This document shows, piece by piece, positions 4,566 to 42,775 of a DNA stretch of 64,000 nt; position 1 is the first letter of the stretch; each line of letters begins with the position of its first letter. A program made the position numbers and the translations under genes. The notes below the pieces were generated by a model, which saw only the letters and a program-made list of their open reading frames with translations, was not told the origin of the DNA and made no database searches. The stretch covers positions 17,794,001-17,858,000 of the forward strand of contig CM075977.1 in the NCBI GenBank assembly GCA_038087875.1, given 5' to 3'. This DNA is from Malacoraja senta (Eukaryota).

Positions 4566-4601
4566 CTGATTCCCAGATTTCTGCTTCTGCATCGTTTTCC
4601 T
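4566..4601 (-). CDS. RIMS2: Candidate RIMS2 microexon, 36 nt, (E)ENDAEAEIWES(G)
   Basis: Very strong acceptor ttttctttccttgctgtctcctttttgtttag|AG GAA AAC...GAA TCA G|gtagga. Phase 1-1, 465 nt downstream of the 5067 exon. Confidence 0.65.
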
Positions 4602-5066
4602 CTAAACAAAAAGGAGACAGCAAGGAAAGAAAATAAAGAATGTGTATGGAATGACGTTGTATAAATTAAAGCACGCAAGTTATAAAATTAGTATCAAACT
4701 AAAATGACCAACAAGATAAGCATGGCAGAAATTTGTTTCACAGCAATGTCACCCATAATAGGCAAAATGTTCTTCTAAAAATATATTTTAGATATTTCTT
4801 ATTGAGCCAAAGTATAACTTTTATAAAGTTGTTCCTATGTCTTCAGATATCCTTTTGAAAAATACATTTATCCTGCCATGCTTGATAAAAAATATGAGAA
4901 TGCAAGGTCAGAAAATAAATTCTAGCAAATTGCAATAAAGAATTTAAAAAAAAACATATTTTGAAAGGAAAATAGAGAAGCACCAACAAAGATACACCAC
5001 ATGTAATACACAATGATATTCTATTCAGATGAACACACAAAAAGGAAACGATAAAAGTAGGCAGAC

Positions 5067-5108
5067 CTGAATTTCTCCGTTTGGGTGAATCCAACTCTTC
5101 TGTGATCA
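5067..5108 (-). CDS. RIMS2: RIMS2 alternative cassette exon, (M)ITEELDSPKRRNS(G); 33 nt (5067-5099, AG acceptor) or 42 nt (TG acceptor)
   Basis: tcttgctttttg|TG ATC ACA G|AA GAG TTG GAT TCA CCC AAA CGG AGA AAT TCA G|gtctgc. Phase 1-1. Resembles the recalled rodent RIM2 insert MITEDMDSTRKRNSG. Confidence 0.8.
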
Positions 5109-5957
5109 CAAAAAGCAAGACATAGACAATGAAGATGAGTGTGAGTGATGTTTTCAGATGATGAAACCAAAACTGATAGAAATGTACTTGATCAGTTTAA
5201 TGGTGAGTTTCATCTGACTGAAACTAGTATAGCTGTAACACGACAGACATAGTTCCATTTTGAAGGTAAAGGATTGCTTGACCCACAAGTAGGCAAATAA
5301 ACTCAGTTAATTAGGGACTTTCCATTGATGCTAAACATGCTAGCCAAATATTATCAAAATTAATGCTGTAATAGAGAAAGGAAATCACAATTCATTGACA
5401 ATATTCTCAGCAGATTTCTTATTGTTTTGATTCATGATATGACTCCCTACTTTCAAATATTTCATATTTGCTCCCTGTCTTAAACAAATGAAGCTTAAGA
5501 TTAATTTGGATCTAAAGTTCAGGCTTGAATTGGATGTTATTTACACTTTTAGTGATGGGAAGATGAAGAACAGATTCCAGATTGTACTGACATGCAATTA
5601 ACAACCATTAAATTAAGTATTCACCATGTTTTTATTAAAGACTAAAAGTAATGAAGAAATTTATGATGCTCTATTTTGCTTCAAGATTTTGAATGAGGTG
5701 TAGCTTTATCATTTCTAGCATACGTAATATAATTAAGATATTATAAATTGAAATAGCTTGTAAAGAATAAGCTAATCAATAATGGCCAACATTTTATTCT
5801 GAAAATCCAAGAGCTTTAATCTCTATTTCTCACTGCAAACTATATTCAACTGCCTACTGATTAAGTTGCTTATTATGCCCTACAATTATCATCTGGAAAT
5901 TAGTTGTGCAGATCTCTTAAAAATAACATATACAGTGACATTTAAGATTTAAAGACC

Positions 5958-8020
5958 GCATGAATGAACTCCAAAAATTGTTCATCCCTGTATAGCAAAA
6001 AAATAAAACGGGGAAGGCGGCTCAACCGTGGCTAACGAGGGAAATCAAGGATAGTGTTAAGTCCAAGAAAAAAACATATACATTGGCCAGAGAAGCAGCA
6101 AACTGGAGGACTGGGAGAAATTTAGAACTCAACAGAGGAGGACAAAGGGGTTAATTAAGAGGAGGAAAAAAGAGCAAGAAAGAAAGCTAGCAGGGAATAT
6201 AAAAACTGACTCTAAAAGCTTCTTTAGCTACTGTATGTAAAAATGAAAAGATTAGTGGAGACAAGCGTAGGTCCCTTACAATCAGAGACAGGTGAATCTA
6301 TAATGGGAAACAAAGAAATGGCAGAACAGTTAAATGAGTACTTTGGTTCTGAATTCACTAAGGAAGACACAATCTCCCAGAAATACTAGCGGACCGAGGA
6401 TATAGTGGGAGGAAGGAACTGAAAGAAATCCACATGTCAGGAAATGGTGTTAGGTAAACTGTTGGGACTAAAGGCTGATAAATCCCCAGGGCCTGATGGT
6501 CTGCATCCCAGAGTATTCAAGGAGGTGGCCATAGAAATCGTGGATGTAGGTGATCATTTTCCAACGTTCTCTCGACTCTGGATCAGTTCCTGTGGACAGG
6601 CGGGTAGCCAACTAAACCCACTTTTTAAGAAAGGAGGGACAGAGAAAATGGGGAATTATAGATCATCAGTAGTGGGGAAGATGTTTGAGTCGATTGTTAA
6701 AGATGTAATAGTAGCGTATTTGGAAAGCAGTGACAGTATCGGTCAAAGTTAGGGAAAATCATGCTTGACTAATCTTCTGGAATTTTTTGAGGATATAACA
6801 AGTAGAATGGATAAGGGAGAGCCAGTCGATGTGGTGTATCTGGACTTTCAAAAAGCCTTTGACAAGGTCCCACACAAGAGATCAGTGTGCAAATTTGGAG
6901 CAAATTTTATTGGGAGTAGTGTAATGACACGGATAGAGAACTGGTTGACAGACAAAGAGTAGGAATTAACGGGTCCTTTTCAGAATGGCAGGGCAGTGAC
7001 TAGTGGGGTGCCGCAAGGCTCGATACTGGGACCCCAGTTATTTACAATATATATTAATGATTTAAATGAAGGAATTAAATGTAGCAACTTCAAGTTTGTA
7101 GATGTGACAAGTGGCAGTGTGAGCTGCGATGAGGATGCTATGAGGCTGCAGGGTGACTTGGATAGGTTGGGTGAGTGGGCAGATGCATGGCAGATGCAGT
7201 ATAATGTGGATAAATATGAGGTTATCCACTGGTGGCAATAACAGGAAGGCAGATTATTATATAAATGTTGTCAGATTAGGAAAAGGGGAGGTGCAACGAG
7301 GCCTGGGTGTGCTTATACAACAGTCACTGAAAGTAAGCATGCAGGTACAGCAGGCAGTGAAGAAAGCTAATGGCATGTTGGCCTTCATTGCGAGAGGATT
7401 TTAGTTTAGGAGCAAGGAGGTCCTTCTGCAGTTGTACAGGGCCCTGGTGAGACCACACCTGGAGTATTGTGTGCAATTTTGGTCTCCTCATTTGAGGAAG
7501 GACATTTTTGCTATTGAGGGAGTGCAGTGTAGGTTCATCAGGTTAATTCCCGGGATGGCGGGACTGACATATGATGAAAGAATGGGTCAACTAGGCTTGT
7601 ATTCACTGGAATTGAGAAGGATGAGAGGGGATCTTATAGAAACATATACAATTCTTAAAGGATTGGACAGGCTAGATGCAAGAAAAATGTTCCCGATGTT
7701 GGGAGAGTCGAGAACCAGGGGTCACAGTTTAAGAATAAGGGGTAGGCCATTTGGGACTGAGATGAGGAAAAGCTTCTTCTCCCGGAGAGTTGTGAATCTG
7801 TGGAATTCCCTGCCACAGAAGGCAGTGTAGGCCAATTCAATGGATGTTTTCAAGAAAAAGTTAGATTTAGCTCTTTGGGCTAAAGAAATCAAGGTGAAAT
7901 GGGGAAAAAGCAGGAATGGGGTACTGATTTCAGATGATCAGCCATGATCATATTGAATGGCGGTGCTGCCTCGAAGGGCCGAATAGCCTATTCCTTCACC
8001 TATGTTTCTATGTTTCTATG
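5958..8020 (+). mobile_element. CR1 LINE, 5'-truncated, decayed ORF2
   Basis: KSPGPDGLHPRV, DFQKAFDKVPH, GVPQGSILGP and RPHLEYCVQFWSP in broken frames. (TTTCTATG)n tail. Confidence 0.95.
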
Positions 8021-9328
8021 ACATGGAAAGATCCCATTACTGGGTGATATCTTGTAACAGGGTAATATTAGCATCTTCATCTTCTTTAATACCTTTTAGT
8101 ATAATTAGTTGCTGAATGCAAATTAAAAATCTTTCAGCAATACTTGGCTCATAATTGACTAATTATTCATTCACAGTTTTTGTTTTGAAATAGGATTTAT
8201 TATAAAAAATTCAATTTGAAAATCATCTTTTTGGACATCGTACAATAATATTGAACGTCAACAAATTTCATTGGAAATGATTTGGTCTTTTACAATATTA
8301 ATTTATTAAGAAAGAAGTTATGAAAACCTCAAAGTGCAGCAATAATTTGGAACCACTATATTTGTGATAACTGGACAAAAAGAGCACTGCAAATGAACAG
8401 ATTACGTTGGAAATCAGATGACAAAATCATATCTCCAAGCAATTCATTTCAGTTTTAAGTTATAATTTGTTGAACAACCTTCACTATGCAGAAACGATTT
8501 TGAAAAAGCTTGGTTGGTGCAAGATTATCTACAGAACAGCTTTACACGATATACCATCAGTTGACAGTAACAACTCAGATATACTACAAAGCTCATTAAT
8601 GGGCTTAATTATGCTTAATCAATCTGCTGACTACACTTGACACACATATTAATCTACCAGTAGCATGTATTGACTGATGTACCCATAGAATGGCCATACT
8701 ATAGCCCTTCACACCATGACCATTCCACAATGTGGAGTAGCTCAGGAGTGTAACACGGTCCTGGATATACCCAACATTGCTTGATATTTAGAAATTATGA
8801 AATGAATTAAAATAATATGTAAGCTATTTAAAAATTATTAAAAATAAAATAATGAATACTTAAAAGACATCATACTAATTACAACATTAAAAAATCAAAT
8901 GAAATTGAAAAACATATATTTTCATGTGGGTTAGAAATTCTGTTTGTGCAGCTGTTAGACCCATTGCTGGACTCACTGGAGAGTCCGGCATGAGATCATT
9001 CACATCTAACTTCCAGTTTGTTCCTTACATCTGGCCCATGTTGAACAGCAGAGGGTAGGTGGGCTTCATTCCCAAAAGAACCTGCTGCTTCAACCAAGCA
9101 CAGTGTAACCTATTGTTCATCCTCATAAATACAATTGACAGTCATTTCTTCAGAAATATCTAGATTATTTTTGATATCAAGAAACTGTGTATCCAACTTT
9201 GTTATTCATTCTTGTAAGGAAGATGTTATTATTCAGTGTATGTACAGGGATAACCAAGTAACCAATCACAAACTATTACAGCAGTCCTTCAGTTATCTGT
9301 GCTGTGAACTCTATGAATTTGGCTTCAC

Positions 9329-9334
9329 CTGTCA
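9329..9334 (-). CDS. Candidate 6-nt RIMS2 microexon TGACAG
   Basis: ccatttttatgctgtttag|TGACAG|gtgaag. Phase 1-1, with TGC just upstream of the acceptor. Confidence 0.35.
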
Positions 9335-10564
9335 CTAAACAGCATAAAAATGGTAAAGCCTCTTACTTTAAAGTACCTCCAGTTTATTTGTTAATTGAAA
9401 TGGTCTTTATTTTTTTGTCATGAATTTATGCTGATTTATGATGAAAGATATCAAAACATTAAATTTCTGATGTAGTTTCAGTATAAAGCAAGCCAGGTTT
9501 CACAGAGCACATTTATGAGTAGAGCAAATATAGTTTTCCTCCTTTCTGATAATCTGCCTCAATCCGTAGAGGAGACTCTCACACCATCTTTTTGAGATGG
9601 AAACTAATTCCGAGAACTGAAAGCTCTTCCCGAACCCACTGCTCGATCCACAAGTCTCAACATAAACTCCAACTAGAATCAAAGTTTTTCTCCAATAGCA
9701 TTGTCGTTGTAGATTTTGAGGTTATTAATACACTTGAATTTTTAATATATCCTGATAACTGAAGTTCCACTGCATTTAACGCACAAAAGGATTAACAGAT
9801 CTTTGGGGAATATTTGATTCTACGAACCACAGGACAAGTAAAAAAATAACACAAATGCATTCCTACCATGCTATGTTAAGTAAGCACACAATAAAAACAA
9901 TACATAAAAACACTTCTCAAACAAATGTGTTCATACTGCACAGAGTGTAAGTGTGTTTTTACTGAAAAGTTCTTAGAATATATAAATATTTTTATAAAAA
10001 TTATTTTATTAACTTTTGCAGTATTTTATCAAGTTACCGGTAAATACAACTGAAATAATGGATCTGCTTTACAATATTAATTTAAACAAGCATCAATTTT
10101 AATGTTGTCATTTCAAATAATAATGGAATATTGTCAAACTCATGATTGTGCAATTTCCCTTTTGATTACTATATAGAAAACTTAATTATATTTTATAATA
10201 TTATTTAAAAAAGTAATCCAAATTTACTAATCAATAGTTAAGTTGCCTCTTAAAATTTAGATTCATTTTCTACTTCATCATTCCTATCCTCTATCTATCC
10301 CTGCGTCATATCCCCATATATTTATAGCCTAAAAATTGTAAGCTGCAAAAAATAGCAATTTACAGACTGTAATACGTATGAGGCAATGCACATGATACAC
10401 TATGTGGGGAGAAGAACACATCATTCATACACCCATCAAAAGAAGCATGAAACCTAAAATTCACTGCTAATTATATAGCGTCTCATGCTTTCCATGGTTT
10501 TCACAGCCTGACAAACCTGGCTCAGAAAGCTGCCTCTGCTTTGACCTGTTATCAGCTACTGTAC

Positions 10565-10600
10565 CATTCATTTTCCTTTGCTGGTCTTCCCAGGTTACTT
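10565..10600 (-). CDS. RIMS2: Candidate RIMS2 microexon, 36 nt, (E)VTWEDQQRKMN(G)
   Basis: tgtttgctatgtttctatttgatttataatag|AA GTA ACC TGG GAA GAC CAG CAA AGG AAA ATG AAT G|gtacag. Phase 1-1 with an upstream TGC. Confidence 0.55.
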
Positions 10601-11248
10601 CTATTATAAATCAAATAGAAACATAGCAAACAATACAATTTTAAGTGCAAAATAAAAAGGGATTTACTCAATTAAAAGGTTGTAAAAAAAACATAATTTC
10701 GTAAAAACATTTGTGAAAGTCATGGAAAAATTGTATCCGATAACAATAAAATTAAATATGACAGAGTAAAGATTCGGGTTTCAGTAAGTCACTCCATTTA
10801 GTCCTTACTTTGATTGACTAAGGTAATGGGCTATTGAAGCGCCAGATCTACCAGACGAAATATAATATATTATCTTCCCCCTTACATTGAGTGAATTTAC
10901 ATATCAGAAGTAGATTTGTCCAAGTTGTTGTCAATGTACAAATAATTTTAATGGCCTTTCAGATCACAGTTTCCTGTACTGTGCATGCCATTTTAAAGAC
11001 TATAAACAGGCATTGTGAATCAAGAATAATTGTACAGTTATTTGCATTGGCATTATGTATTCATTCAATCAGTGACCTGAATAATCTATTGAGTTCTACT
11101 TAAAAACTGCCACATGCAACATGTTTACCATGATCATATTGGCAGTTTGTTTTGAGTAAGAACTTCAGGCCCATCTTTGCAGGCACTGAATGCAAGATAT
11201 GGAACGCTGAGAGAGATGGCAGAGAAGTATACATGTGCAAGCACTCAC

Positions 11249-11975
11249 AGACTATACAGGGACACATGTTCTTATCTCAAACACTCCGAAGACCAATGTC
11301 TCCACAGGTTTTGGTGAATGAAGGCCATTGTTGCTGAAACATACGATATTCTCAAATCTCTAGTCACACACAAAGGTCACTGTGAATCTTAACTTGCGAG
11401 CCAGTTAAACACTGCCGATCCATGCCTTTCTCAGTTTGCTGCTTAACGCAGCATCAGGGTGGCCCCTGATGCTACATATCAATGGCATTATTCTTCAGTG
11501 ATATTGATAAGGATTCATATTCATGTGGCATTTCCTTATTGCCAACATCAACAATGCTGGTCATGATCAACTGGACTCATATGATTTGAACTCCCTTCAG
11601 AAACCAGATCTCTTCATGAGGACCTACTCACTCCATATCCAAATTTACATTGACCATTAGAAGAATAGTCTCAAGATCTATGTCATGTATACTGGAAGCG
11701 TATAAGACTCCTTCATTCTAAAGGACTCCACTTTGCCAACATCCTTCATTGACAGTACTGCCCAGTCAGTATTGGGTGCCAAGGACTTTGCAACAGGTTC
11801 CAACTTTTTCTTCCTGTGTCATTACTAGGAAAGCCATAGCATAAATAGGATCCGAGTTTGTGGGCATACTGCCTCTTAACAATCTGGCTACCTGGATAGC
11901 TCAGTTCATATGCTGGAGGTATTCAACCAGAAGAGCAGATACCAGAATAAAGAGCAGGAGGAAGACAAAAACAGT
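11249..11975 (+). pseudogene. Fossil PIF/Harbinger (HARBI1-like DDE) transposase
   Basis: Ordered degenerate motifs: RLYRDTCSYLKHSEDQCLHRF, KVTVNLNLRAS, INWTHM (IDCTH, 11566), YSLHIQIYIDH, YTGSV*DSFILKDS (YPGSVHDSFIL, 11688), VLGAKD (LLGDKGY, 11769), then an acidic tail. Confidence 0.75.
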
Positions 11976-12686
11976 AGCAACACGATGACTTGGCACAACA
12001 GGTGCAGGGGCATGTGATCATGTGGCTAGTGGCAGAAGGAAGGCTACAGCAGCGGTGATCCTGCCTAAATTCTAATTACCATTTATTTGTAAAAGAAAAA
12101 CCTCATTCAAGGAATCCTCAAGGACACCTTGCATTTGTTATATTGATTTATCATTGTCCACTTAACAAACGAAAAAGTAAAATAGGTCTAAGACAATTTC
12201 ACCAACAAGGAGGGAGATGAGAGGATGTAATTTTCCAGGAAGCTATAGGAATTCTGACCACTCACAATGCATCGCCGACTGTTACAAGAATCCCAATCAA
12301 ATGCTCAGCTGTTTTATGTTTACTGCTTATGAATTCTGCAACCAATATCATCGGCATCAAATACAGCCAATGTAAAATGCCTTGGCTGGAAGCATTACAT
12401 TACAAGATCAATGAAGAGCACATAAAAGGTAGACCTACAGCAGCTGTGATTAATGGGCACTTTAATCAATGCAGACATGACCTAACATGGATAAGATGGT
12501 GCTGCCAACTCAAAAATTCCTTTGAGAAATTTGAGAAAATTAAGGAACACACACCACTGTTTTTTCATTAAAGGTGGAGCCATGATCAACTGCTTATTTA
12601 AAATCTGTTCTCAGTGATTTCATATTTGCTCGGTTCTAGAGAAAACAATTCCCTCTTTATTATTAATTTACTATACATTTATGCTG

Positions 12687-13310
12687 CTTCTCCCTAGGCA
12701 GTCCCTCAAGAATACTTACTTCCACTCTGGTTTTGTGGGTTCTAAGGTGGGTACCATAGATATGAAGCCAAGTGGTGATCAATGGGGTGAGTGGATTGGC
12801 AATCTGTGAATGAGGAATTTTGTGCTTAACAAAGGCTTCTGTGTGCACCTGATCTAAGGTCTCAAGGTTCATAACAATACAAATGTTTCTTCTCTACTTT
12901 GAGTGGTCTTGGGCTAGAATTTCCTCAGAGTCAATGAGAATGTTTCATTTCTTTCAGGAGGCCTTGAGAATATTTTTGAATCTCTTGTGTAGGAAGGAAC
13001 AGCAGATGCTGGTTTAAACTGAAGATAGACACAAAATGCTGGAGTAACTCAGTGAGACAGGCAGCATCTCTGGAGAGAAGGAATGGGTGATGTTTAAGAT
13101 CATGCCTCTTCTTCAGACTGAAAGTCACCCATTCCTTCTCTCCAGAGATGCTGCCTGACTCGCTGAGTTTTTCCAGCATTTTGTGTTTAACTTCTTGAAT
13201 CTCTTCCTCTGTCTACCCAGTAATCTCTTCCTAAAACAGTGTGGAACAAAGTACCTGTTTTAGGAGACTGTTGGATCTTAATGTGCTCAACAGGGAGAGC
13301 ATTTCGAGGT
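12687..13310 (-). mobile_element. Old RTE-type LINE 3' fragment, interrupted by a Penelope palindrome
   Basis: CTAGGCAGTCCCTC...CTTCCACTCTGG terminus resembles RTE/BovB 3' ends. The sequence resumes after the insert. Confidence 0.45.
12987..13190. mobile_element. Inverted (palindromic) Penelope pLTR pair with TSD
   Basis: ACACAAAATGCTGGAGTAACTCAG...CCCATTCCTTCTCTCCAGAGATGCTGCC arms. TTGAATCTCTT is duplicated at 12976-12986 and 13195-13205. Confidence 0.8.
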
Positions 13311-13951
13311 GTAAGTTTTCAAGCATATCAACATTGCAGCAGTGGCAGTGCCAGCTTGTTTTCAATATCAAAGGTTTTTAACAAAAATGAACCAATCCAC
13401 AATTGGTCTGCGTACCTCCGATAGAATCATTTATCAATAGCAGATGAATAGTAATGAATGCAAGCACAAAAGAACACGACTCAGTGAGCCAATCGGGATA
13501 TGATGACTGGCTGCAAATCCTGCCATTGTTCCAGGATCAGCCATTTCCCAGTATATGCACACCACTATTGCAGTTGATGACGATTGTACTGGAGATAACT
13601 TCAGTGTATCTACAGTAACAAATTATTTATAAGTTTTGGCACTGAATGATAACAAACCACACTGCTGCAGCAGCCTGAGAGATGTTAAGTATCACAACGG
13701 GCTCTGGGAGGACACCCTGCCAACTAGTGAGAGAGTTGGTGGAAACCACAAAGCAATGAAGTACAGTGAAGAAAGGTCTTGTGGCCGTCCCTTGGTCAGA
13801 ATAGTTGACCTATTTCGACACAGCCCAATCAGCTGACCCTGAGCAGATAACAATATTCTGGGAACTAAAATCCTCTGCAAGGGACAATGCGATAAATTGG
13901 CAATGAGGAGGTATGTAATGCCTGGAAGGTATGTACATAAATACATACATA

Positions 13952-14071
13952 GGTAGACACAAAATGCTGGAGTAACTCAGCGGGTCAGGCAGCATCTCTG
14001 GAGAGAAGGAATGGGTAACATTTCGGGTCGAGACCCTTCTTCGATTTACACCAGCATCTGCAGTTCTTTCC
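13952..14071 (-). mobile_element. Penelope pLTR fragment with a 14-bp TSD
   Basis: Reverse complement of GAAGAAGGGTCTCGACCCGAAATGTTA. TAAATACATACATA at 13938-13951 and 14072-14085. Confidence 0.8.
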
Positions 14072-24964: not shown

Positions 24965-26668
24965 GTCAAAGCCAATGTAACACCTATATTTAAAAAAGGA
25001 AGTAAACAGAAGGCGGGTAACTATAGACCGGTTAGTCTAACATCGGTGGTGGGTAAAATGTTAGAGACAATTATTAAAGAAACACTAACGGGGCACTTGG
25101 ATAAACATGACTTCATCGGACAGAACCAGCATGGTTTTGTGAAGGGGAAGTCCTGTTTAACGAATCTGCTCGAATTCTTTGAGGAAGTAACAACCCGGGT
25201 GGATAAAGGGGAACCGGTGGATGTGGTATACTTGGACTTCCAAAAGGCTTTTGACAAGGTGCCACATAAGAGACTATTGCTAAAAATAAAAAATTATGGG
25301 ATTGGGGGTAATATATTAGCATGGGTAGAGGATTGGCTAACAAATAGGAAGCAGAGAGTGGGGATAAATGGTTCATACTCGGGATGGCAACCGGTAACTA
25401 GCGGGGTTCCGCAAGGGTCGGTGCTGGGACCCCAGTTGTTCACAATTTATATAAATGATTTGGAGGAGGGAACCAAGTGTAATATATCAAAATTTGCGGA
25501 CGATACAAAAATGGGAGGAAAAGTAGGGGATGAGGAGGATAGGAAGAGTCTGCAAAAGGATATAGATAAGCTAGGTGAGTGGGCAACAACTTGGCAGATG
25601 AAATTTAATACTAATAAATGTGAAGTCATTCACTTTGGGAAAAAAAATGATAGGGCAAGTTATTTTCTAAATGAGGTGGAGCTGCGTTGTAATGCAACGC
25701 AAAGGGATCTAGGGGTAGTAGTACATGAATCACTAAAAGTTAGTATGCAGGTGCAGCAAGCAATCAGGAAGGCCAATGGAGTTTTGGCCTTTATTGCTAG
25801 GGGGATTGAGTATAAAAACACGGAGGTCTTGCTGCAGCTGTACACAGTATTAGTGAGACCACATTTGGAATACTGTGTACAGTTCTGGGGTCCATACTTA
25901 AGAAAGGATGTACTGGCCCTGGAGGCATTGCAGCGAAGGTTTACAAGATTAATTCCTGCAATGAGGGGATTGACATATGAGGAAAGGTTAAGTAGGCTGG
26001 AACTCTACTCTTTGGAGTTTAGAAGAATGAGAGGCGATCTCATTGAAACATATAAGATCGTGAGGGGCCTTGATCGGGTGGATGCACCGAGGATGTTCCC
26101 AATGATCGGGGAAACTAGAACTAGGGGACATAGTTGTAGAATAAGAGGGGGCTCTTTTAAAACTGAGATGAGGAAGAACTTCTTCACCCAGAGGGTGGTT
26201 AATTTATGGAATTCACTGCCCCAGGGAGCAGTGGAAGCAGAAACATTAAATATATTTAAGTCTAAAATAGATGTTTTTTTAGCTGCCAAGGGGATAAGGG
26301 GCTACGGGGAGAGGGCAGGGATATGGACCTAGGTATGGTTAGTATAGTAAGACCTGAGTGATCTCCTGGACAAGTGTCGATCGCCTGGATTGGGGTCGGA
26401 GAGGAATTTCCCGGATTTTTTTCCCGAATTGGACCTGGGTTTTTATCCAGTTTTTTGCCTCCCCCAGGAGATCACGCGGTTCTTGGGGTGGAGAGGGGTG
26501 ATAGCGATATAAAGGGGAGGGTAGTGTCTTGTGTTCTGTGTCTTGTGTCTACTGTTTGTGGGTAAGGGTGTCTGTTTAGTGTTCAGCCATGAGCGAATGG
26601 CGGTGCGGGCTCGATGGGCCTGGTGGTCTACTCTCGCACCTACTTTCTATGTTTCTATGTTTCTATGT
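24965..26668 (+). mobile_element. CR1 LINE, 5'-truncated, with an uninterrupted RT frame to the native stop (26332) and a long 3'UTR
   Basis: Open from ANVTPIFKKG..NYRPVSLTS through KFADDTK to ERAGIWT*. (TTTCTATG)3 tail. Confidence 0.96.
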
Positions 26669-30176: not shown

Positions 30177-30480
30177 TTTAGTTTAGAGATTCATCGCAGA
30201 AATAAGCCTTTTGGCCCTTCAAGTCTGCACCGACCAGCAATCTCTGCACACTAACAATATCCTACACACAATAGGGACAATATAGAATTTTACCAAGCCA
30301 GTTAGACAACAAACCTGTATGTCTTTGGAATGTGGGAGGAAACAAGAGCACCCAGAAAAAACCCAAGCATGGCACGGGGAGAATGAACATACTCCATAGC
30401 GATAGAACTCGTGGTCGGGATTGAACCCGGGTCTCTGGTGCTGTAAGGCAGCAACTCTATCGCTGCAGCAACATGCCGCC
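30177..30480 (-). mobile_element. tRNA-derived SINE (V-SINE/HE1-like)
   Basis: Head GGCGGCATG...CAGCGATAGAG, B-box GGGTTCAATCCC, (CTAAA)n tail. Related copies near 19150-19300, 38830-39035 and 50856-51134. Confidence 0.75.
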
Positions 30481-31505: not shown

Positions 31506-32262
31506 AAAACATGCAAGTGCTATTAAAAATTAGTTCAAAGATTCTCTACGTTTCCGCACTTGACATTTCCATTTTCATCTCTCTGAATGAATGAGCATAA
31601 CACAATTTCTAAGTCCTCTGGCATCCATAAATCTACAGCATTAATATAAAACTGACATGAAATGTGCAAGGACATTTTAGGACAGAAGTCTATGTATAGC
31701 ATGAACTGAGTGGAAATCCATCAAAGATGAATGTGCACAGTCTTAGGAATGTGCCCCCACTAGGATCCCGTACAATTGTAACAATCAAACAGCTTTTGAT
31801 CCTTTGAAGGAATCATAGAACATAAAATAAATCCCAAATTCTGACAAAGATAATCTGTCCACTAAATGAATAGTGCAATGGGATTGTGAAAGTGGGAGAT
31901 TAAGAGGATGGATAATTTAGGAGACAACTGTCATATGCGGACCTTTTTAAGGCAACAACCCAATTACATTTTACATTGTCCAACAATGGTTGCTTTACTC
32001 CCTCTGCTGGATATCCACAGGACAAATGCTCAATGTGCACAACCTGCACAATTCTCCTTCAAAAAATACATTGCCATGTTTATCTACAATTTTAGTTTGT
32101 AACTTTCCTATTATTCTTGCCCACAACATACTAAACATCCATATAATTCACTGAATCCTGTTATAAATGAATATATATTAAAACTTGAAAAATGCTAGAA
32201 AAGCTAGCATGCCTTAATACACATGCCTCAATAGCATGCCTTAAAAGCTAGCATGCCTTAAT

Positions 32263-32358
32263 CCGTCTGAAGAAGGGTTTCGGCCCAAAACGTTGCCTAT
32301 TTCCTTCGCTCCATAGATGCTGCTGCACCCACTGAGTTTCTCCAGCATTTTTGTGTAC
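32263..32358 (+). mobile_element. Penelope pLTR with stuttered target-site repeats
   Basis: GTCTGAAGAAGGGTTTCGGCCCAAAACGTT. CATGCCTTAA(T) is repeated upstream and once downstream. Confidence 0.75.
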
Positions 32359-32570
32359 CATGCCTTAATACACGTTGTACATATAAAATGCTCATGGTCG
32401 GGATGATAAATATAGTAGTATGTTTTATTTGCTTACTTTAATCTACCTTTATCTCTTTTGAAGCCCTGTTACAAAAAAACAATAACATAAAGAGAAATGT
32501 ACTACTAAAAATAATTGACTTTTCTATTTTATAATTTACTTTCAAAGGATTTAAAAACTAATCCCTTAAC

Positions 32571-32627
32571 CTGTCCTTTCCTGCTGCCTGCACCAGCTAC
32601 CCTGCATCTGGTCATCAGTCAAAGACA
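32571..32627 (-). CDS. Candidate RIMS2 cassette, 57 nt (or 27 nt, 32601-32627), (V)SLTDDQMQGSWCRQQERT(G)
   Basis: ccttttgcatagttacag|TG TCT TTG...; two in-frame donors, CAGG|gtagct and ACAG|gttaag. Phase 1-1. The acceptor is only moderate. Confidence 0.35.
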
Positions 32628-33579
32628 CTGTAACTATGCAAAAGGCTGCATGAGGTTAGGATGAATTGAGATCTTAAAGGTGTTTGGTTTAGTGCAGACT
32701 GCTAATAACCAGAATTGTTGAGGACTACATTTGTAACATCTCCAAACTTATAACAGCAGTGGTGGAAACAAAAGTGGAGCTCATGTGATATTTTTCGATT
32801 GACAATTAGCCCACAGGGTTTTTTTTTTTTTAATATTGACGTTCGCTGTTCTTCTGGAATCTTGCCAAGTACAACTTGGTGGCTGAAAATTTTCAGTCGA
32901 GATACACTATTTTGTGATGTGAAATTCGCGCATCTAGTGAATTCAATAGATGCAGCTAACATGCTGTATAAGTTTGGAAATATTACATTTCCGGCTACTA
33001 ACATTTTGCATTCAATCAGCAAGAATAAATTTTTGTAGAACCGTAGAATTTTTATGATACATTTTTTTGTCGGAGGATGAACGTTTACCAAAACACTAAG
33101 TAATATGGTCGACGTCTAGCTCAATGCTGTTTTATTATCAGCACACGTACTTATGAATTTCATGCACCAACAATTTTAGAAGAGTATGTTGCTGCTCCTG
33201 GCATGCCATTAAAATAGAAACATGGAGCTTCAAACCAGTTGCATTGCACAAGGTGCCTAATAATGCACCCATGTCTAACAATATTAGGTCTGGTCAGTCG
33301 CTTTGGAATCAGCCAAAAATCTGCAGCTTTGGCATGCTAACCCCTTTTGTCACTTAAAGGAATGATAGAAATTAGCAAACATTTCTTGAATCATAGCATC
33401 TGCCAAAAGAAATCAACTAGCAAGGCAACCTCAAAGCAGTCAATGACCCCTTTACTGCTAAATAGAGATTAAGACTGTTTTGGACTAAAATCTCATGGAC
33501 TTATTCTGAAATTAGGAAATCTTGATACACAAGCTTCATATCTGTTACACTGGCTCACTTTCCATGGCCCCTTTATCCA

Positions 33580-34090
33580 CAGCTTTCGCAGAACACCTTC
33601 GCTCAGTCCGCCTGAACCTGCCTGATCTCCCGGTTGCCGGACACTTTGATTCTCCTTCCCATTCCTACACAGACCTTTTTGTCCTCGGTCTCCTCCATTG
33701 TCAGAGTGAGGCTAAATTGGAGGAAAAGCATCTCGTATTTTGCTTGGGCAGCTTACAGCCCAGTGGTATGACTATTGATTTCTCTCACTTCAGATAGCCC
33801 TGGCATTCCCTCACTCTCCATCCCTCCCTCACCCAAGTTGTACTAGCTTCTCATTTTCACCCAACAAACCGCTAACAATGGCCTGTTTCCTTTATCATTA
33901 TTACTTGTTTTGCATATGTTTCATTCTTTGTTCTTTATCTCTCCACATCACCGTCTATATCTCTATATCACGTTTCCCTTACCCTAACTAGTCTGAAGAA
34001 GGGTCTCGTTGCGAAACGTTACCCATTCCTTCTCTCCAGAGATGCTGCCTGTCCTGCTGAGTTACTCCAGCTTTTTGTGTCCATCTTTAG
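33580..34090 (+). mobile_element. Penelope-like element 3' end (GIY-YIG endonuclease C-terminus plus pLTR)
   Basis: FAEHLRSVR..LPVAGHF..EEKHLVFCLGSLQPSGMTIDFSHFR*. pLTR with CTGAAGA..GAAACGTT at 33993-34020. Confidence 0.85.
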
Positions 34091-34463
34091 CCATATTTGA
34101 TTGCCTCCCAGCATGCAAGAGAGCTGCACGAAGTCCCATAAAGATCCAATGACAGCGAAAATTGTTAAAAACCAGGGGAGTTGCAGATATTCGTTGCGAG
34201 CTAAGGTGAACTGTCCTTCTCTTTTATAATCTTATGTCCTTTGCATGGCTACCATGGTGGTATATTCTTGAGTTAAAATTGGAGTTGGGGCCTGAGGTTT
34301 TAATACAACTAGATCCAAGGTTAGGGTTATGATTAAGTGGGGTTGAGGAGTCACTTGGTGCATCGCCTAAACTTATCTGTTGGGGCCATTGCACCAGGCT
34401 GTTCCAAATCTCTTGCTCTACCTAGGTTCCAGCTTCAGGAAGGTTTTGCTAACATAGCATTTA

Positions 34464-34925
34464 AGGGGCTGTCCCACTTGGGCGACCTAATCCGCGAGTT
34501 CTGGCGAGTTTGCCCTCGACTCATACTCGCAGCATGTTCGACACAAGGTCCTAGGAGGTCTTTGTAACTCTCCTTCATGCTCGAGAGTAGTCCCCGTGTA
34601 CTCGAGGCCTCAGCTAGGTCGCGGCATATTTTTCAACGTTGAAAAATGCCCGCGAGTAATAAAAGGTCGGCATTGAAAAAATCAATACTTTTTTTACTCG
34701 TAGTTTTGGTCGTAGTAGGTCGTAGTAGGTCGGCATGCTAGTCGTATGTAATCGAGGGTAGTCGAAGGTAGTCGAAAGTGGTCATAGATAGTCTTCATCA
34801 TAGTCGAAGGGAGGTCGAAGGAGGTCTTCTACATAGTCAAAGGAGGTCTTCAACATTACATTTTTTCAAACTCTCCTAAACTCTTCTAAACTCGCCAATT
34901 AGGTCGCCGCAGTGGGACAGCCCCT
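34464..34925. mobile_element. PIF/Harbinger-type MITE
   Basis: TIR AGGGGCTGTCCCACT..GGCGACCTAAT, flanked by TTA/TGA. Confidence 0.8.
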
Positions 34926-35049
34926 TGATGCTTACACCTCAGCTTGAAAATGGATACTGAATCCTGATGCAATTATAGAACAAAGTTTATTAATTTAAAC
35001 AAAATCTCACTTCGTAACTACTGATGATTAAGGACGAAATGGGATTGGT

Positions 35050-36000
35050 ATAATAATAATAATAATAATAATATATCTTTATTGTCATTGTACAAGAACA
35101 ACGAAATTAAGATTGCAACCTCAGTATCAATGCTATAAAATAAATAAATACGTACAAATAGGTCCATGTACACTGAAGGGTCTGTCCCACTTGGGTGTCA
35201 TTTGCGTGTCATTTACGCTACATCATTTACGCGTCACGATGGTGAGGCGTGGTGGCGTAGGCAGCGACCAGTGGTCGCGCGCGGCGCCCCAGGATTTTGG
35301 GATTCACAAAATCTTTGCGCGCCACCTGCGTGACGTGCAAATGACGCGCAAGTGGGACAGGCCCTTTAGGTTAATAATTAACGCTGCTGTCACTGTGTTG
35401 AGATAAGTCAGTTGTGCCAGTTGATTATGGGGCAAAGACAGATTATGGGGAACACTTAGCAGACTGATTCAGTGCATTTATAGCTCTACGGAAAAAGCTA
35501 TTTCTCAGTGGAGGTATGGGCGTAAAAGGCCTTATAACGTCTGACTGATGGAAGAAGTTGAAACAGACGGTGGCATGGGTGTTTGGAGTCCTTACAGATG
35601 CTGATGGCTTTTCTATGGCAGCATGCGTTGTAGGTGTCTTCCAGGGCTGGGAGCTGTATCCCAATGATCTTCTGTGCTCTGGAGACAACCCGCTGGAGAG
35701 CTCTCTTATCCGCAGCTGTGCAACTAAGATACCACACAGAGATGCAGTATGTTAGGATGCTCTCTGTGGTGCAGCGGTAGAAAGTCACCAGCATCTGTTG
35801 CGGCAGACCAGCTTTTTTCAGCATCCTCGGGGAAAACAATGGTGCTTTCTTGACCAGTACAGTGGTGTTACTGGACCATGTGAGGTCCTCTGAAATGTGT
35901 GAGCCCAGAAACCTGAAGCTGGACACTCTCTCCACTCTGTCCCCGTTGATGAAGACTGGCGCATACTCATCATCCTGTGACTTTCTAAGAACTGACATCC
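35050..36000 (-). mobile_element. Rex1/Babar-type LINE 3' part (RT C-terminus) with (ATT)n tail
   Basis: VERVSSFRFLGSHISEDLTWSSNT..FYRCTTESILTYCISVWY..HPCHRLFQLLPS. Confidence 0.85.
35177..35365. mobile_element. PIF/Harbinger-type MITE nested in the Rex/Babar 3'UTR
   Basis: TIR AGGG(T/C)CTGTCCCACTTG, flanked by TGA/TTA. Confidence 0.8.
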
Positions 36001-36425
36001 TTTATTTTAATTGCCATGCCACATTATTTCTTTCTGGTGACAATAATTAAATCTGGGGATCTCCAAGCTTAGTTATTATATTAACTCCTTGAAAAGTCCT
36101 TTGATTTTTGACTTATCACATTGTCATAAAATAATGATTTATCATAAAATAAAATAATTCTTTCTGTCAACACATCAAACCAAAGAACTCCGGGTTTTGA
36201 TGAATAAAATTACACAATTTTTAAAAGCCAGATAAAAAGTTTATATAAACAATAGATACGCACACTGACAGAACAAAAACTAAAAGAGGAAGGCATGAGA
36301 AAAAAACTGGATCAAATAGTTAACATCAGGTCGCAGAGACATACATATAAATAATGCTGCAAAGCTGGGATCTATTCAACTAACATCTACATTTTAATCA
36401 CCCAAAAGCATTCAATGGAACTTGC

Positions 36426-36470
36426 CTTTCCTCCCGTTAACAGGTGTAAATTGAGCTTTCTCCTCAGCGT
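36426..36470 (-). CDS. RIMS2: Candidate RIMS2 microexon, 45 nt, (D)AEEKAQFTPVNGRK(G), GC donor
   Basis: gtgcttgtgttttttaatcttataaag|AC GCT GAG...AGG AAA G|gcaagt. The donor equals the GC-AG consensus AAG|GCAAGT. Phase 1-1. Confidence 0.6.
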
Positions 36471-37454
36471 CTTTATAAGATTAAAAAACACAAGCACTGT
36501 AATTAATAGACTGGCAACACATCAACGAAAAATAGGCTGATGGAATGCAATATCCTAACAGTACAATACATGGAAATGTTAATTGAAATTTGATTTAACA
36601 TGTTGTAAACTGCACATTGACACAAGTGGAAAACAAACATATACACGCTTATTCACACATACAATTCTCAAACATCAATTTGAATTAGGAAGCATCATTT
36701 CCTGATACAAATGGATGCAGTTAAAGGAGAGACATGAAGGTTTGAACACAACTGGAGTTCTTATTTCTTTTTAGGTTTAGCAGACATTTTACTTACTTTG
36801 TTAAAACACGCTATGATATATTTATGCCCTTGGTATAAAGAAACTGCTTCTTACAGAAGCTATGGTACATGTATTTCCCTATAAAGATCTCCATTATTTA
36901 CATTAGAGGTAGTTCAATGTTTATTGCTTAAGTGCTGGATTAGTGACACTATCCTTTCTTTCAACTATTTGTATTACAGTACAATTTGTAATTGTATTGT
37001 AATTGTAATTGTAATTAATTTATTAGCCAAGTATGTAAAAACATACAAGGAACTATGACAGAGGAGAGTACTTGTTTCATCACAAGGATTGAACAGGCAA
37101 CAGAATACTAGTGCTTCCAATCTTGTGCATTCAATTAGTTTGACCTCAGCTTCCATTGGCCAGTAACTATCCATTAAAGTCTCACAATGTCAATCTTGTA
37201 CCATAACTCATAATTTAATCATTTAAATTTCTGTAGGTCTTGGGGAAATCAATAAACTTTCCTTTGCTGATAACATTCCCCAAAATTATTTTCTTTAATC
37301 TTAAATCTTTAATGCTTAAAATTTCTGTGAACAATGCTTTTGCATATATACTTTTTTCAAATCTCCAATATATTTTCAAGGGAAAAAGTACTAACTGCAT
37401 TTTAAAAAACAGCTTGTTTCAAGAAATTAAAATATAAAGAGAATATTGTGGAAT

Positions 37455-37678
37455 TGTCTGTGGAATTCTCTGACTCAGAGGGCGGTGGAGGCAGGTTCTC
37501 TGGATGCTTTCAAGAGAGAGCTAGATAGGGCTGTTAAAAATAGCAGAGTTAGGAGATATGGGGAGAAGGCAGGAATGGGGTACTGATTGGGGATGATCAG
37601 CCATGATCACATTGAATGGCGGTGCTGGCTCGAAGGGCCGAATGGTCTACTCCTGTACCTATTGTCTATTGTCTATTG
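37455..37678 (+). mobile_element. CR1 3' fragment
   Basis: LWNSL..FKRELDRA plus 3'UTR and (TATTGTC)n tail. Confidence 0.85.
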
Positions 37679-38028
37679 TTGCATGATGCATGTTGTTTAT
37701 TATGAGGTTCACAGGTATAGATGGACTTAATTTTAGATGTGAATTATCCAGCATGATCTTTGTACTATAAACATATATTATAAGTGGAATAACATGCCAA
37801 GGATTGCATAAGAAAATCATGTTTTTTTTATATCAACGGGTCAAAGCAAAGGTTGTCACTTTGTTGACAGAAGATAAAAGATGATTATCAATAACTAACC
37901 CAAATCCTGGTAAAAATCATAGTTTAGATGGGTAAGATATCTCTCCTTAACTGGAAAACATAACTAGTAGGAGTTACAATATTCACACCACAGCACACAA
38001 ATTCTACTTGGTCACAGACAAGACAAAC

Positions 38029-38076
38029 CTTCCTCCACCTCTGACCAACGTTCCTGAGTATTTTCATTGTCTTCTT
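38029..38076 (-). CDS. RIMS2: Candidate RIMS2 microexon, 48 nt, (E)EDNENTQERWSEVEE(G)
   Basis: ttttgttggcattatgcag|AA GAA GAC AAT...GAG GAA G|gtttgt. Phase 1-1, open frame, GAA-rich. Confidence 0.55.
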
Positions 38077-39514
38077 CTGCATAATGCCAACAAAATTCAA
38101 ATTCAGTATGCAAAACTTAGGTAAGATAATTTTCTGTCTGACCAATAAAAACAAGCTCTGAAGAAAGACAAACCAGTGGGTCACACCAAAGTCAAACTGA
38201 AAATGTCATTAAGAGGGCATGGGTAGATATATATTCCACCAAGTTAATACGTGTCTACTAACTGTTTAAAAAAAATCAATTCTACACCTGCAACATTTTG
38301 AATTATCAAGGGAAAAAGCTTGCACTGCTTTATTTGTCTGATTATAAATGCAAGTTAAATTGGGTCCAATAATTATGATCTTAAAATTAAATAGGGATTA
38401 TGTTGGTCTCCCTCCTTCAGTTCTGGTAAAGACAGTGATATTATCAGCCTTCCAGGCTGTTTCATGGCAGAGGGCTGTGCTCAACTCATGGGAAAGGAAG
38501 TGCTCCGTGTATAAGTTCATAGATATATCTATATTTGAAATAGTAAAAGAATAAATATAAATATATATATATTTAATTAATTATGAATAAATTCATCAAT
38601 AAATGGAATTACATTGACCTGAATATAGAATAAATCTCATCAGACAAATGTTTGACTTCAAAATGAATTTCAGATGGAAAATATCCCGCAGTCAATCCAC
38701 ATCATATAATTCAATTCGGCTCAGGTAATTTTCACATTTATTTACAATTTAGGAGATTTCAGCCCATTTAGTACAAGCCAAAATTTGCAGCAATATTCCC
38801 ACCCAGCAAATTTTCCTGAAATCTATTCTCCCATTGTGATTCTCCTGGCAACTATCATTAGCAGGAGGAATTTGCAGTAGCCAATTTGTCTACCAACACA
38901 ATTGTCAGACATGCTGGAAACAGGGCCAGATGGACACAGTCACAGGGAGAACACACAAACTACATACAGAAATCACTCCGAGCAGATTGAATCAAGATTG
39001 TTGGAGCTAAGGCAGTAGTACTACTTGCCACTCTGTCGAAGATGTGGGCAACATTTAGGCCAGAGTGAAATGACAAGCAAAATCTGTGCCACACATGTGC
39101 CAGGTAACGTCACCTTGACATTCAGCAGCAAAACCATCACCAGCAAAGTCAGCTGCCAGCAGTTTATAGCAATGTTTAAGAGGCAATTAGACAGACACAT
39201 GAACAGGCAGGAAACAGAGGTATACAGACCATGTGCACATCCTGCCCTGCACCCTCTGACCCACCAGCATTTAACCTGGGTGAGATGTGGTTGACTGGAC
39301 GGGCTGCCTTTACACTCTAGGAGTTAGGTGGCAAGGTGCCGTGAGGTCTCAGCAGCAAGTAACGCCCCAGCCTGTAGTCTGCTGAAGCCCATCCCCAAAT
39401 AACACTGGCAACTTATGACAGAAAATTAGGGATGCAGTTCTGCCTCCTGTCAAAGCAGTTTTTAATTGTCTGCTATATTTAAAAAAAAAGATGAATTAAT
39501 GAATAATGATTAAA

Positions 39515-40060
39515 ATCTGGTCACATATATCCGAGGACACTGTGGGAAGCTAGAGAAGAAATTGCTGGCACCCTGACTGAGATATACAAATTATCACTTA
39601 ACTCGGAGAAGGAGGCATAGGACAAGTATAGGCAACTGGGATCAAGTGTATCCCTGGAGGAACTAAGAAGTAAGCTAAAAAAAGTGTAAATAGGGGCAAG
39701 AGATAACTCTGGCTGATAGCATTAAGGAAAATCCCAAGAAATGTTATTAGCAAATATTGGGGAAATGAGTAACTGGAGAGTAAGTGGGACCCCTCAGGAA
39801 TCAAAGCGGTCAAATCTGTGTGGAGTCATAGAAGATGGGCAAGGTCCTCAGTGAGTATTTCTCCTCTGTTTTTAAAATGCTGAAAAACAGGAGGATTGGG
39901 GATCTTAGTATAGTCACGAAGTGTCTTGAGAGCAGTCAGTATTACGGTCGCAGAGGTGTTGAAGGTCCTGACGCGTATGAAGATAGATAAATCTCCCGGG
40001 CCTGATCAGATATATCAGAGGACACTGGGAAGCTAGAGAGGAAATTGCAGGAGCCCTTGC
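39515..40060 (+). mobile_element. Rearranged old CR1 ORF2 fragments
   Basis: KSPGPDQIY..RTLWEAREEIAG motif occurs at about 39530 and about 40017. Confidence 0.65.
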
Positions 40061-42742
40061 TTTGGCTCGCATCATATTTAACCCATTCTATTGGCCCAAC
40101 TTTTACATGGCAATCAAGATGGTATCAGTGATACACCCATACACATGCATTTGGTCCATATCCCTTTTAACCCATCCTAACCATTTATCTATCCAAATGC
40201 CTCTCTGAATATGCCAGACATTCTACTGTGTTGCATTGTGTTTTTATATACTGTGTAATTATTTTATATATAATAAGAATCAATTGCTAATAGGCAATAT
40301 TGTGTATGCAGAATGAGCTTTGTAAATTCTAACAAGCCCTCAATGTACGTGACCTGATTATACACAATGATCCTCAGGCAGCAACTGCGATGTAAATCAT
40401 TGTGCATGCACAGTTGGAATCACTGGAATGATTCCATGATAAATGCAGTAACAAAAAAGGTGGTGTGAGCATCAGCATTGCTTAAGGTACTCATGCCTAT
40501 CTGAATTGCTGTTGGCTATTCCATGATTAAATAACCCTGTAATATTCAAATATTGTCCTAATATTATCCATCAACCAACTAAGTCCTTCTTCCTTCTTAA
40601 AGGGATATCATGATATTAGATTTATAAGCATAGAGGTGTAAAAGCAGGAAGTATAAGCAAAGAACTGCAGATGCTTGTTAATAAACAAAAGGACGCAGAG
40701 TGCTGGAATAATTCAGCAGGTCAGGCAACATCTCTGGAGAACATGGATAGGTGATGTTTTGGATCATGAAGGGTCTTGACCCAAAACATCACATGTTCTG
40801 CATCAATGCTGCCTGACCTCCTGAGTTACTCCAACACTTTGTGTCTTTAAATGTAAAATCAAATTCCTATAAATTGGCTTTACCCCATTTTTAGTTCACT
40901 AAATGGGCATTATATTTTGTCCTAACATTAAATTGGATTTCATGAAAATAAAATCAGTAAATAGCAACATTTTCCCTTTAAGAAATTGCTTTGGTGGTTA
41001 TTGACCTGTTCAAAATGGTGGAAATAGATTTGCAAGTTCACAGAGGGCATTTTCCATTGAGAGGGAGGAACACGGGTGGAGGGAAATCAGAGAATGAAGG
41101 ATGAGAACAGGATTGGGGAGAGTAATTGGGAGCATTAATGTCCTCTCTCAGACTAGAGAGGGGTGTAGTCTGTCCCCATGTTATGAATGGACCAAATGCC
41201 ATCAGCTTCACGGATCACAGATAAAGAGAGGTTTCGAGCCGAAACGTCACCCATTCCTATTCTCCAGAGATGCTGCCTGTTCCGCTGAGTTACTCCGGCA
41301 TTTTGTGTCTATCTTTGGTTTAAACCATCATCTGCAGTTCCTTCCTACACAGTTGAATCTGTCTATAGATACTGCAATCTAAATAAGTGTTGTCTGCATA
41401 TAGAAGATACGCTTTAGGGCATCAATGGATATATACAAAATAAATTACAACAGGAACCCTTTAATTCCCATTTGGCTGTGGACCTTCTGCAATGTGTACT
41501 CTATGTTTGAATATTTCTTGACATTAAAGATGGCAAGTTGAAAGCTCTTGATCCAATTTCTGTCCACAAGTCTGAAACCTGCACTGCATGCATTGATATC
41601 ATTACATTCACAAAAAATAGTATGTAAATGGCACTGCCATTATGTGAAATGGATATGTTTAGTGTAATTTCCTGTTGGGCGGTTCTTCAACAGGAAATGA
41701 GAGCAAACTGCTCTCATTGAGAGAGGGTATGTGCATAAAACGAAAACCAATTTTTTTTTTCTTATCCAATTCCAGGTCACGGGAGTTTTACCATGCAACC
41801 ATGAATATTGCTGAAATGTGTAAATTCTACAATTTTTGATTGCCAAAATGCAATTTACTATAAAAGTGTCAATCTAATGTTTAATGTTACATCTAACAGA
41901 CTTTTAAAACATTATCTGGTTCACACTTGGTAAAGAGCTATGTCTTCATCAATTTGAGTGTACAAGGGAACAATCTCTGCATCTGAAGGGATTGGCAAAA
42001 AGAACACATTGTACAGAGTCGGCAGCTTCAGCTAAATGAGTGTGGACATTCCCAGGCATCTTGCTAACATAAGCTTTGATTTTTAAATGGTAATAGATAT
42101 TTTATGGCAAAAATGTGATTTAAAATTTTATTTGATGAAACCAAGTCTACCTTCCCATTTGCATAACGGTTGCCTAGCAGTATCGTTACATATTTATTAT
42201 TCAAAGATAAACACTATACAGTATATACATAATTAGAGGCTGAAGTTATTTTCTATAATGTACTTGAAGTCCTATGTATTTGTTAGAAATCAAAATTAAC
42301 TGCTTAACGCAATCAATATCAAAAATAATAATTGAAATCATGCAACTATGCAATGCATATATTTTGGGTGTATGTGCAGTTACACATTCATACATTACAA
42401 AAAATACCTGTGAAGCTTTTCTTCTGAACAGTTTGTACTTATATTCTCTACCCATACCCTTTGTACAAAATGACTGCAATTGACACTACATGGTTTCCTG
42501 CCCATAAGATAACATTATTTGTAGCGAACTCTACTCTAAATCTAATTTTATATCAAATCTAGACAAATATTTGAAATATCTGTTATTTTTTTTTAAAGGA
42601 AATGGGAAACTAAAAATGTAATTGCTGATATTATAAAACTGGACAACTGAAACCAGAGGAAATCTATTGCAGTTGTGCTTATTTCTGCAGAAAAAGCCCA
42701 AAAGACTCCTCCACAAAAGTAACACTATTTCTGATTACAAAC

Positions 42743-42775
42743 CTTCATAAAGATCAATTCCTTCTTCTCCATTGT
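42743..42775 (-). CDS. RIMS2: Candidate RIMS2 microexon, 33 nt, (N)NGEEGIDLYE(G)
   Basis: Long pyrimidine tract ...cttttccctgttacttccttcccag|AC AAT GGA GAA GAA GGA ATT GAT CTT TAT GAA G|gtttgt. Phase 1-1, purine-rich, about 800 nt downstream of the GTLER exon. Confidence 0.65.

Follow-up and report, generated by a model that had tools for sequence, protein, structure and literature searches.

Six conserved cassette exons at a probable splice site C of RIMS2 in the cartilaginous fish Malacoraja senta

We analysed a 64-kilobase (kb) window of contig CM075977.1 from Malacoraja senta, the whole stretch from position 17,794,001 to position 17,858,000, which is free of N runs and carries part of the RIMS2 gene on its minus strand. 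Past the exon that encodes the RQLPQLP motif, an SH3-binding site for RIM-BP (hereafter the PxxP exon), lie six cassette exons that very probably make up the alternatively spliced 'site C' of RIMS2 in a cartilaginous fish, with any subset of the six remaining in frame. Positions below count from the first letter of the window, lengths are given in nucleotides (nt), a slash within a nucleotide or junction sequence marks an exon border, and the numbering E1 to E8 includes two unsupported candidates, E4 and E6, which are treated further on. The six exons are:

42743-42775, minus strand: E1, 33 nt, phase 1-1, encoding (N)NGEEGIDLYE; strong acceptor, orthologues in proteins and in bird DNA.
38029-38076, minus strand: E2, 48 nt, phase 1-1, acidic, encoding (E)EDNENTQERWSEVEE; protein homologues and an aligned donor.
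36426-36470, minus strand: E3, 45 nt, phase 1-1, encoding (D)AEEKAQFTPVNGRK, with a GC donor at 36424-36425; tblastn matches to bird proteins.
10517-10600, minus strand: E5, 84 nt, phase 1-1, encoding (E)VTWEDQQRKMNGTVADNRSKQRQLSEP; tblastn match over the full 84 nt.
5067-5099, minus strand: E7, 33 nt, phase 1-1, encoding (E)ELDSPKRRNS, with a CAG/AAG tandem acceptor; orthologues in proteins and in bird DNA.
4566-4601, minus strand: E8, 36 nt, phase 1-1, acidic, encoding (E)ENDAEAEIWES; the best splice-site scores among the candidates.

The exons were compared with 315 RIM proteins, obtained as matches in a search of representatives (mostly fragments) and through three word-index searches, which cover RIMS2 isoforms of birds, turtles, lizards, crocodilians, frogs, mammals and teleosts as well as three elasmobranch isoforms. 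For comparison at the DNA level, two bird contigs spanning site C were used, from Tinamus guttatus (L001) and Tauraco erythrolophus (L002). Significance of DNA similarity was estimated by Smith-Waterman alignment against shuffled controls and is expressed as z. Splice sites were scored with a simple weight matrix (not MaxEntScan) built on consensus frequencies, and these scores are rough.

Three coding exons that precede the block are colinear with bird RIMS2:

57360-57437, minus strand: RIMS2 coding exon of 78 nt; tblastn match to residues 1151-1176 of bird RIMS2 (P0044), AG and GT borders seen.
46221-46400, minus strand: RIMS2 coding exon of 180 nt; tblastn match with E 1e-21 and blastn matches in both bird loci, borders checked.
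43567-43676, minus strand: PxxP exon (RQLPQLP), 110 nt; read from the sequence and matched by blastn in both birds.

The PxxP exon is bounded by the acceptor acgcag and the donor gtgagt and ends with one spare base, A at 43567, that is, in phase 1. A search of 1.84 billion cluster representatives with its 36 residues returned 40 RIM proteins. The N-terminus of P0210, the orthologous protein of the shark Chiloscyllium plagiosum, is identical to the last 36 residues of the exon at 46221-46400, and all named matches listed for this protein, besides P0210 itself, are RIMS2 of amphibians, reptiles, birds, mammals and teleosts. The PxxP exon, the colinear flanking exons and the best matches of P0210 thus point to the RIMS2 orthologue, in agreement with the first-pass annotation of this DNA, which had placed the cassettes directly past the RIM-BP-binding exon of RIMS2 and had that exon end in phase 1. 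The AMD(I/V)EER exon is not present in the window and is located past its left end; the exons for the zinc finger and the PDZ, C2A and C2B domains likewise fall beyond the 64 kb. The name given to P0210 at NCBI, 'RIMS1 isoform X10', differs from the name RIMS2 carried by its Narcine orthologue and by the other named matches listed, an apparent inconsistency of naming.

When the six exons are joined in the order E1-E2-E3-E5-E7-E8, with E5 in its long form, their translation can be aligned over its whole length, with the exon order kept, to the site-C segments of falcon, cuckoo and eagle. The longest bird isoforms continue after GTLER with NNGDKEIESYE, AEDEENKRPGIQESEVE, ADCEEKHQNPPLNGRK, EVTWEDQQKKVNGTITDDKPLPKKKHHSEPE, EAESSRRRNS and EEKKADPENGDT, followed by GAMDVEER, and the RIMS2 isoform sets of Falco naumanni (P0044) and Accipiter gentilis (P0068) contain all six exons in the same order and phase. 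In P0210, near-identical peptides with few substitutions per exon (10/11 identities for E1, 12/16 for E2, 10/15 for E3, 10/11 for E7 and 12/12 for E8) precede GTMDVEER, and E5 is skipped. The mammal Ictidomys has E1, a longer E2, E3, E5 and E7, and two isoforms of Narcine bancroftii have E1 as their sole cassette. The array had been described as hidden, which does not hold: five of its exons stand in a RefSeq isoform of Chiloscyllium (P0210) and all six in bird isoforms.

Conservation is also seen in the DNA. The lengths of E1, E2, E3, E5, E7 and E8 are 33, 48, 45, 84, 33 and 36 nt in the window and 33, 54, 45, 90, 33 and 36 nt in both birds, all multiples of 3, with E2 and E5 each 6 nt shorter in the window. 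When the whole window was compared with the two birds by blastn, colinear blocks appeared at the PxxP exon, at both exons preceding it and at E1, E3, E5 and E7; the only other matches were a weak one of 56 nt in the intron that follows the 46.4-kb exon and a repeat-like one of 29 nt. For E2 and E8 the similarity was too low for the blastn threshold and was seen only by Smith-Waterman comparison and in the alignments. In the Smith-Waterman comparisons of the six exons (z range 2.4-55), the best match coincided with the orthologous exon of the bird each time, apart from that of E8 in Tinamus. Across the site-C interval, DNA conservation between window and birds is confined to the six exons and their flanks, the 29-nt repeat-like match aside.

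Looking at the exons individually, the E1 peptide corresponds to NNGDKEIESYE in birds, NNGVKEIEPYE in mammals, NNGEEGIELYE in Chiloscyllium and NNGEEGIGLYE in Narcine, and the exon keeps its 33 nt in both birds at z of 10-15. The E2 peptide reads EEDHENTLEQWSEVEE in Chiloscyllium and has homologues in birds, a turtle, frogs and one mammal; the 3' end of the exon together with its donor, TCAGAGGT.GAGG.AG/GT.TGTCT, is kept in the two birds, the acceptor aligns too, and z is 2.4-3.4. The E3 peptide reads DAVQKTHFTPDNGRK in Chiloscyllium and DNKGETPSLPNNGKK in mammals (Ictidomys), and the exon measures 45 nt in the window, Tinamus and Tauraco, with z of 17-19 and its end set by ..NGRK/E junctions in Chiloscyllium, bird, frog and mammal proteins. 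Its donor has GC at positions +1 and +2 in an otherwise near-perfect consensus (AAG/GCAAGT). Both the weak acceptor ATAAAG/A and the GC donor AAAG/GCAAGTT are identical in the window and in the two birds, so that this GC-AG intron dates back to the jawed vertebrates.

E7 has the orthologous peptides EELESPKRRNS in Chiloscyllium, EAESSRRRNS in birds and EVDSTRRRHA in mammals, and keeps its 33 nt in bird DNA at z of 10-18. The peptide of E8 is identical in Chiloscyllium (EENDAEAEIWES) and has homologues in frogs, turtles, lizards and teleosts; in birds (EEKKADPENGDT) the exon has 36 nt, with TAG/A.GAAAA...CAG/GTAGG.TG kept, at z of 4.5-6.2. E8 was found in no mammalian isoform sampled. The exon set of the window equals that of birds and frogs and exceeds that of the sampled mammalian isoforms by E8 alone; the proposal of an array larger than the mammalian set comes down to this one exon, and the array is not larger than the tetrapod set. 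Identity with birds extends to the E3 GC donor and to the flanks of E5 and E7, in contrast to the strongly diverged residues of E2 and E8.

For E5, the first-pass annotation had given 36 nt (10565-10600), which is only the first part of the exon, and the conserved donor at 10517 extends it to 84 nt. This long-form donor, GAGCCAG/GTTTGTCAGG (GAGCCAG/gtttgtcagg), is identical in the window and the two birds, where the exon has 90 nt and z reaches 42-55. E5-bearing isoforms among the 315 proteins run on past ..N into a stretch beginning with GT, GS or GA, with three exceptions: the distant paralogue P0040 and the fish models P0024 and P0241, which diverge inside the exon. If the 36-nt form were used, at least as an alternative to the 84-nt form, its 5' splice site would be the donor AATG/gtacag at 10565; the presence of this internal GT in the window and both birds would fit such a use. 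This GT, however, lies inside conserved N-G-T codons, so that its conservation is accounted for by the coding sequence; its donor score of 2.5 is the weakest of the set, no isoform of any species sampled ends E5 at that point, and the long-form donor and the downstream intron are identical from window to birds. We regard the short form as highly improbable and treat E5 as an exon of 84 nt.

The PxxP exon ends in A and each of the six cassettes in G. Since every upstream exon ends in A or G, no stop codon arises at the junctions, and with lengths that are multiples of 3 any subset stays in frame, as had been proposed; the junction residue alone varies, being K, N or S after A and E, D or G after G. 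Predicted junction residues are present in annotated isoforms, for example in GTLER-K-VTWEDQQ and GTLER-K-EAESS. A rough classification of annotated vertebrate isoforms by regular expressions yielded 27 inclusion patterns, which bears out the expectation of many combinations; the figure of 256 combinations is reduced to at most 64 with six exons. The net charge (basic minus acidic residues) of E1, E2, E3, E5, E7 and E8 is -4, -7, 0, 0, 0 and -6 in the window and -3, -5, 0, 0, 0 and -3 in the falcon. Thus, the alternation of acidic (E1, E2 and E8) and net-neutral (E3, E5 and E7) modules is conserved from window to falcon. These comparisons establish the exons with their borders and order, show them to be conserved from cartilaginous fish to birds and mammals, and document variable inclusion in annotated isoforms, among them isoforms of a shark and of a ray.

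P0040, a distant RIM-like protein of 1506 amino acids with a long proline-rich region, contains ..GTRK-EVTWEDQQ.., corresponding to E3-like and E5-like exons. Given these exons, part of the cassette block may predate the duplication of RIMS1 and RIMS2.

The first-pass annotation had listed eight cassettes. All eight stretches exist at their places and have the lengths, AG acceptors, phase-1 frames and terminal G described for them, and six of them are the exons given above; the remaining two are without support:

32571/32601-32627, minus strand: E4, the VSLTDDQ candidate, 27 or 57 nt; weak acceptor score, within the chance background.
9329-9334, minus strand: E6, the VT candidate, 6 nt (tttag/TGACAG/gtgaag); read from the sequence.

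To estimate the chance background, we enumerated cassettes with the features on which the eight had been chosen (AG...GT/GC borders, 6-60 nt, a multiple of 3, open in phase 1, terminal G and no junction stop, at lenient splice-site thresholds) on both strands of a 39-kb interval. The counts were alike, 22 on the sense and 26 on the antisense strand, so these features alone cannot validate the set. A stricter splice-site cut left three cassettes on the sense strand (E1, E7 and E8) against none on the antisense strand, and the splice-site scores of E2, E3, E4, E5 in its short form and E6 lie within the background.

In an eight-cassette model, E4 and E6 would be elasmobranch-specific additions to the six conserved exons, and if one or both were used the site-C array would be larger than in any annotated tetrapod. 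Both candidates have a phase-1 open frame, a terminal G and AG and GT borders, and E6 has in addition a reasonable pyrimidine tract, TGC at -10 and a good donor (CAG/gtgaag). Exons confined to one lineage should be missing from birds in any case, so that a negative result there is compatible with them. However, two other 6-nt cassettes in the same introns have acceptor scores like that of E6 and higher donor scores. None of the 315 RIM proteins contains an E4-like peptide, or an insert between ..NGRK and EVTWEDQQ or between ..SEPE and E7, and the multi-exon isoform P0210 joins E3 directly to E7. Splice sites and frame, whose conservation had been proposed as a check, are kept in the two birds for all six other exons, whereas the Smith-Waterman comparison with the two bird introns found no counterpart of E4 (z 0.1-1.0) or E6 (z 0.8-2.5), the best matches being non-colinear. 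E4 (27/57 nt) and E6 (6 nt) are most probably cassettes left open by chance, each with a very small probability of being a genuine exon, and we consider it very unlikely that elasmobranchs use TGACAG at 9329-9334, the stretch at 32571-32627 or both atop the six ancient cassettes. Neither should be annotated without transcript support. Self-comparison within the window gave no match at the exons; the one repeat fragment that it found is separated from E4 by over 200 nt.

Two of the six exons are accompanied by conserved intron sequence:

10480-10516, minus strand: conserved intron element downstream of E5, about 35 nt in the window-bird alignment, including GAAAGCATGAGAC.
5100-5166, minus strand: conserved intron upstream of E7, about 65 nt, including TTGTCTATGTCT and TGTGATCACAG; window-bird alignment and blastn.

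The block after E5 contains GCATG at 10484-10488, located at +29 from the exon in the window and at +31 in both birds; it is preceded by A rather than U, and among the six exons a conserved GCAUG occurs at E5 only. Directly upstream of E7, the 9 nt TGATCACAG at 5100-5108 (minus strand) are identical in the window, at about 78933-78941 of L001 and at about 40865-40873 of L002. They correspond to the extension in a proposed 42-nt form of E7, and read in phase 1 they encode M-I-T. The extension is thus conserved in the two birds, but the dinucleotide before it is TG, not AG, in all three sequences. Four older bird models (P0179, P0184, P0208 and P0268) contain GTLER-MIT-EE.. across these 9 nt, which may represent a non-canonical acceptor that has been conserved or, if the four models misread the stretch, a conserved element serving as branch site or in regulation. 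Farther upstream, at 5109-5166 (minus strand), about 60 nt are conserved with birds, with TTGTCTATGTCT invariant and several YCAY (Nova-like) motifs in the window. Being conserved, the flanks of E5 and E7 are promising regions in which to seek the regulators of RIMS2 linker splicing.

Two observations concern E7 itself. Its acceptor is of the tandem (NAGNAG) type, CAG/AAG at 5094-5102 (minus strand), and bird isoform pairs differing by one glutamate at this point (for example, P0168 and P0169) fit the use of both sites. In addition, KRRNS forms a basophilic kinase motif of the RRxS type, which reads RRRNS in birds and frogs and RRRYA or RRRHA, with no serine there, in mammals.

As to regulators, the literature gives some hints for this region: a block of three Rims2 exons (20-22), not stated to be the site-C exons discussed here, is included more often in RBM5 knock-out mice (PMC7381114), and a neuron-specific RIMS2 microexon, not stated to be one of these exons, has been mentioned (PMC7273530). 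The first-pass annotation had regarded the cassettes as microexons, most of them with upstream TGC, and on that view the six exons would belong to the neural microexon programme that depends on SRRM3/4 (nSR100). They resemble nSR100/SRRM4 neuronal microexons (Irimia et al. 2014; PMC4387716) in belonging to a neuronal synaptic gene, in being small and frame-preserving and in having TGC near several acceptors, and Rims2 is named among the genes with nSR100-regulated microexons in the mouse, although the regulated Rims2 exon is not specified (PMC4387716). The microexons of that class measure 3-27 nt, whereas the supported exons here have 33-84 nt; of all candidates, the class would admit only the unsupported E6, at 6 nt, and E4 in its 27-nt form. 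TGC is indeed present within -35 to -4 of the acceptor at five of the six supported exons; in the same introns it precedes 39% of AG sites overall and 50% of the pyrimidine-rich ones, and the excess is neither clear nor significant. Membership of the six exons in this programme is in our judgement unlikely.

Cassettes of this kind have a known counterpart. Wang and Sudhof reportedly described in 2003 (Genomics 81:126) a 'splice site C' of RIM1 and RIM2, with several small in-frame cassettes used in varying combinations between the PxxP motif and the C2B domain, and we take the block in the window to be this site. Position, gene family and the small in-frame cassettes are the same, and the window differs in nothing fundamental, representing the cartilaginous-fish orthologue. 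The exon block is an already known feature of RIM genes, which public gene models contain for a shark and for numerous other vertebrates, at an ordinary locus, and as a discovery it carries small weight. What the window adds is a corrected exon map, with E5 at 84 nt, and the finding that the six-exon phase-1 module is older than the split between cartilaginous and bony vertebrates, as are the E3 GC donor and the conserved intron sequence beside E5 and E7.

In the RIMS2 site C proposed here, the six exons would add acidic (E1, E2 and E8) or mixed-charge (E3, E5 and E7) pieces to the low-complexity linker before C2B. Neuronal splicing factors would control their inclusion by way of the conserved intron flanks, such as the Rbfox-type GCAUG 29 nt past E5 or the block of about 65 nt before E7, and the inserts could tune the linker that joins the RIM-BP site to C2B in its spacing or length, in its charge or perhaps, through the RRxS-like KRRNS of E7, in its phosphorylation. 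A code of charge and length in this linker, as suggested in the first-pass annotation, is an idea.

Several points weigh against the reading of six site-C exons. E2 and E8 are weakly conserved with birds at the DNA level (z 2.4-6.2), the best match of E8 in Tinamus lies off the orthologous exon, and both are recognised mainly by peptide matches, aligned splice sites and their place in the exon order. Most of the supporting proteins are Gnomon models, in which exon combinations are partly computational, and the alternative, as opposed to constitutive, use of the exons in M. senta itself is read from isoforms of other species. The assignments to regulators rest on short motifs, and the TGC counts add no significant enrichment.

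The 29-nt match between window and bird (26171-26199, minus strand, against 23079-23107 of L002; ACCACCCTC.G.GTGAAGAA.TTCTTCCT) is roughly colinear and was considered as a hidden exon; it was rejected, being repeat-like and having no exon features. Long open reading frames lie in the upstream introns at 62785-63363 (minus strand), 55591-56122 (plus strand) and 61787-62149 (plus strand), with motifs of the reverse-transcriptase tail type (..RFTR.LPG...LGLYSLE.RRLRGDLIE..), and are taken to be probable fragments of LINE-type retroelements. Short repeat copies are found near 32271-32360, 13952-14040 and 199-279.

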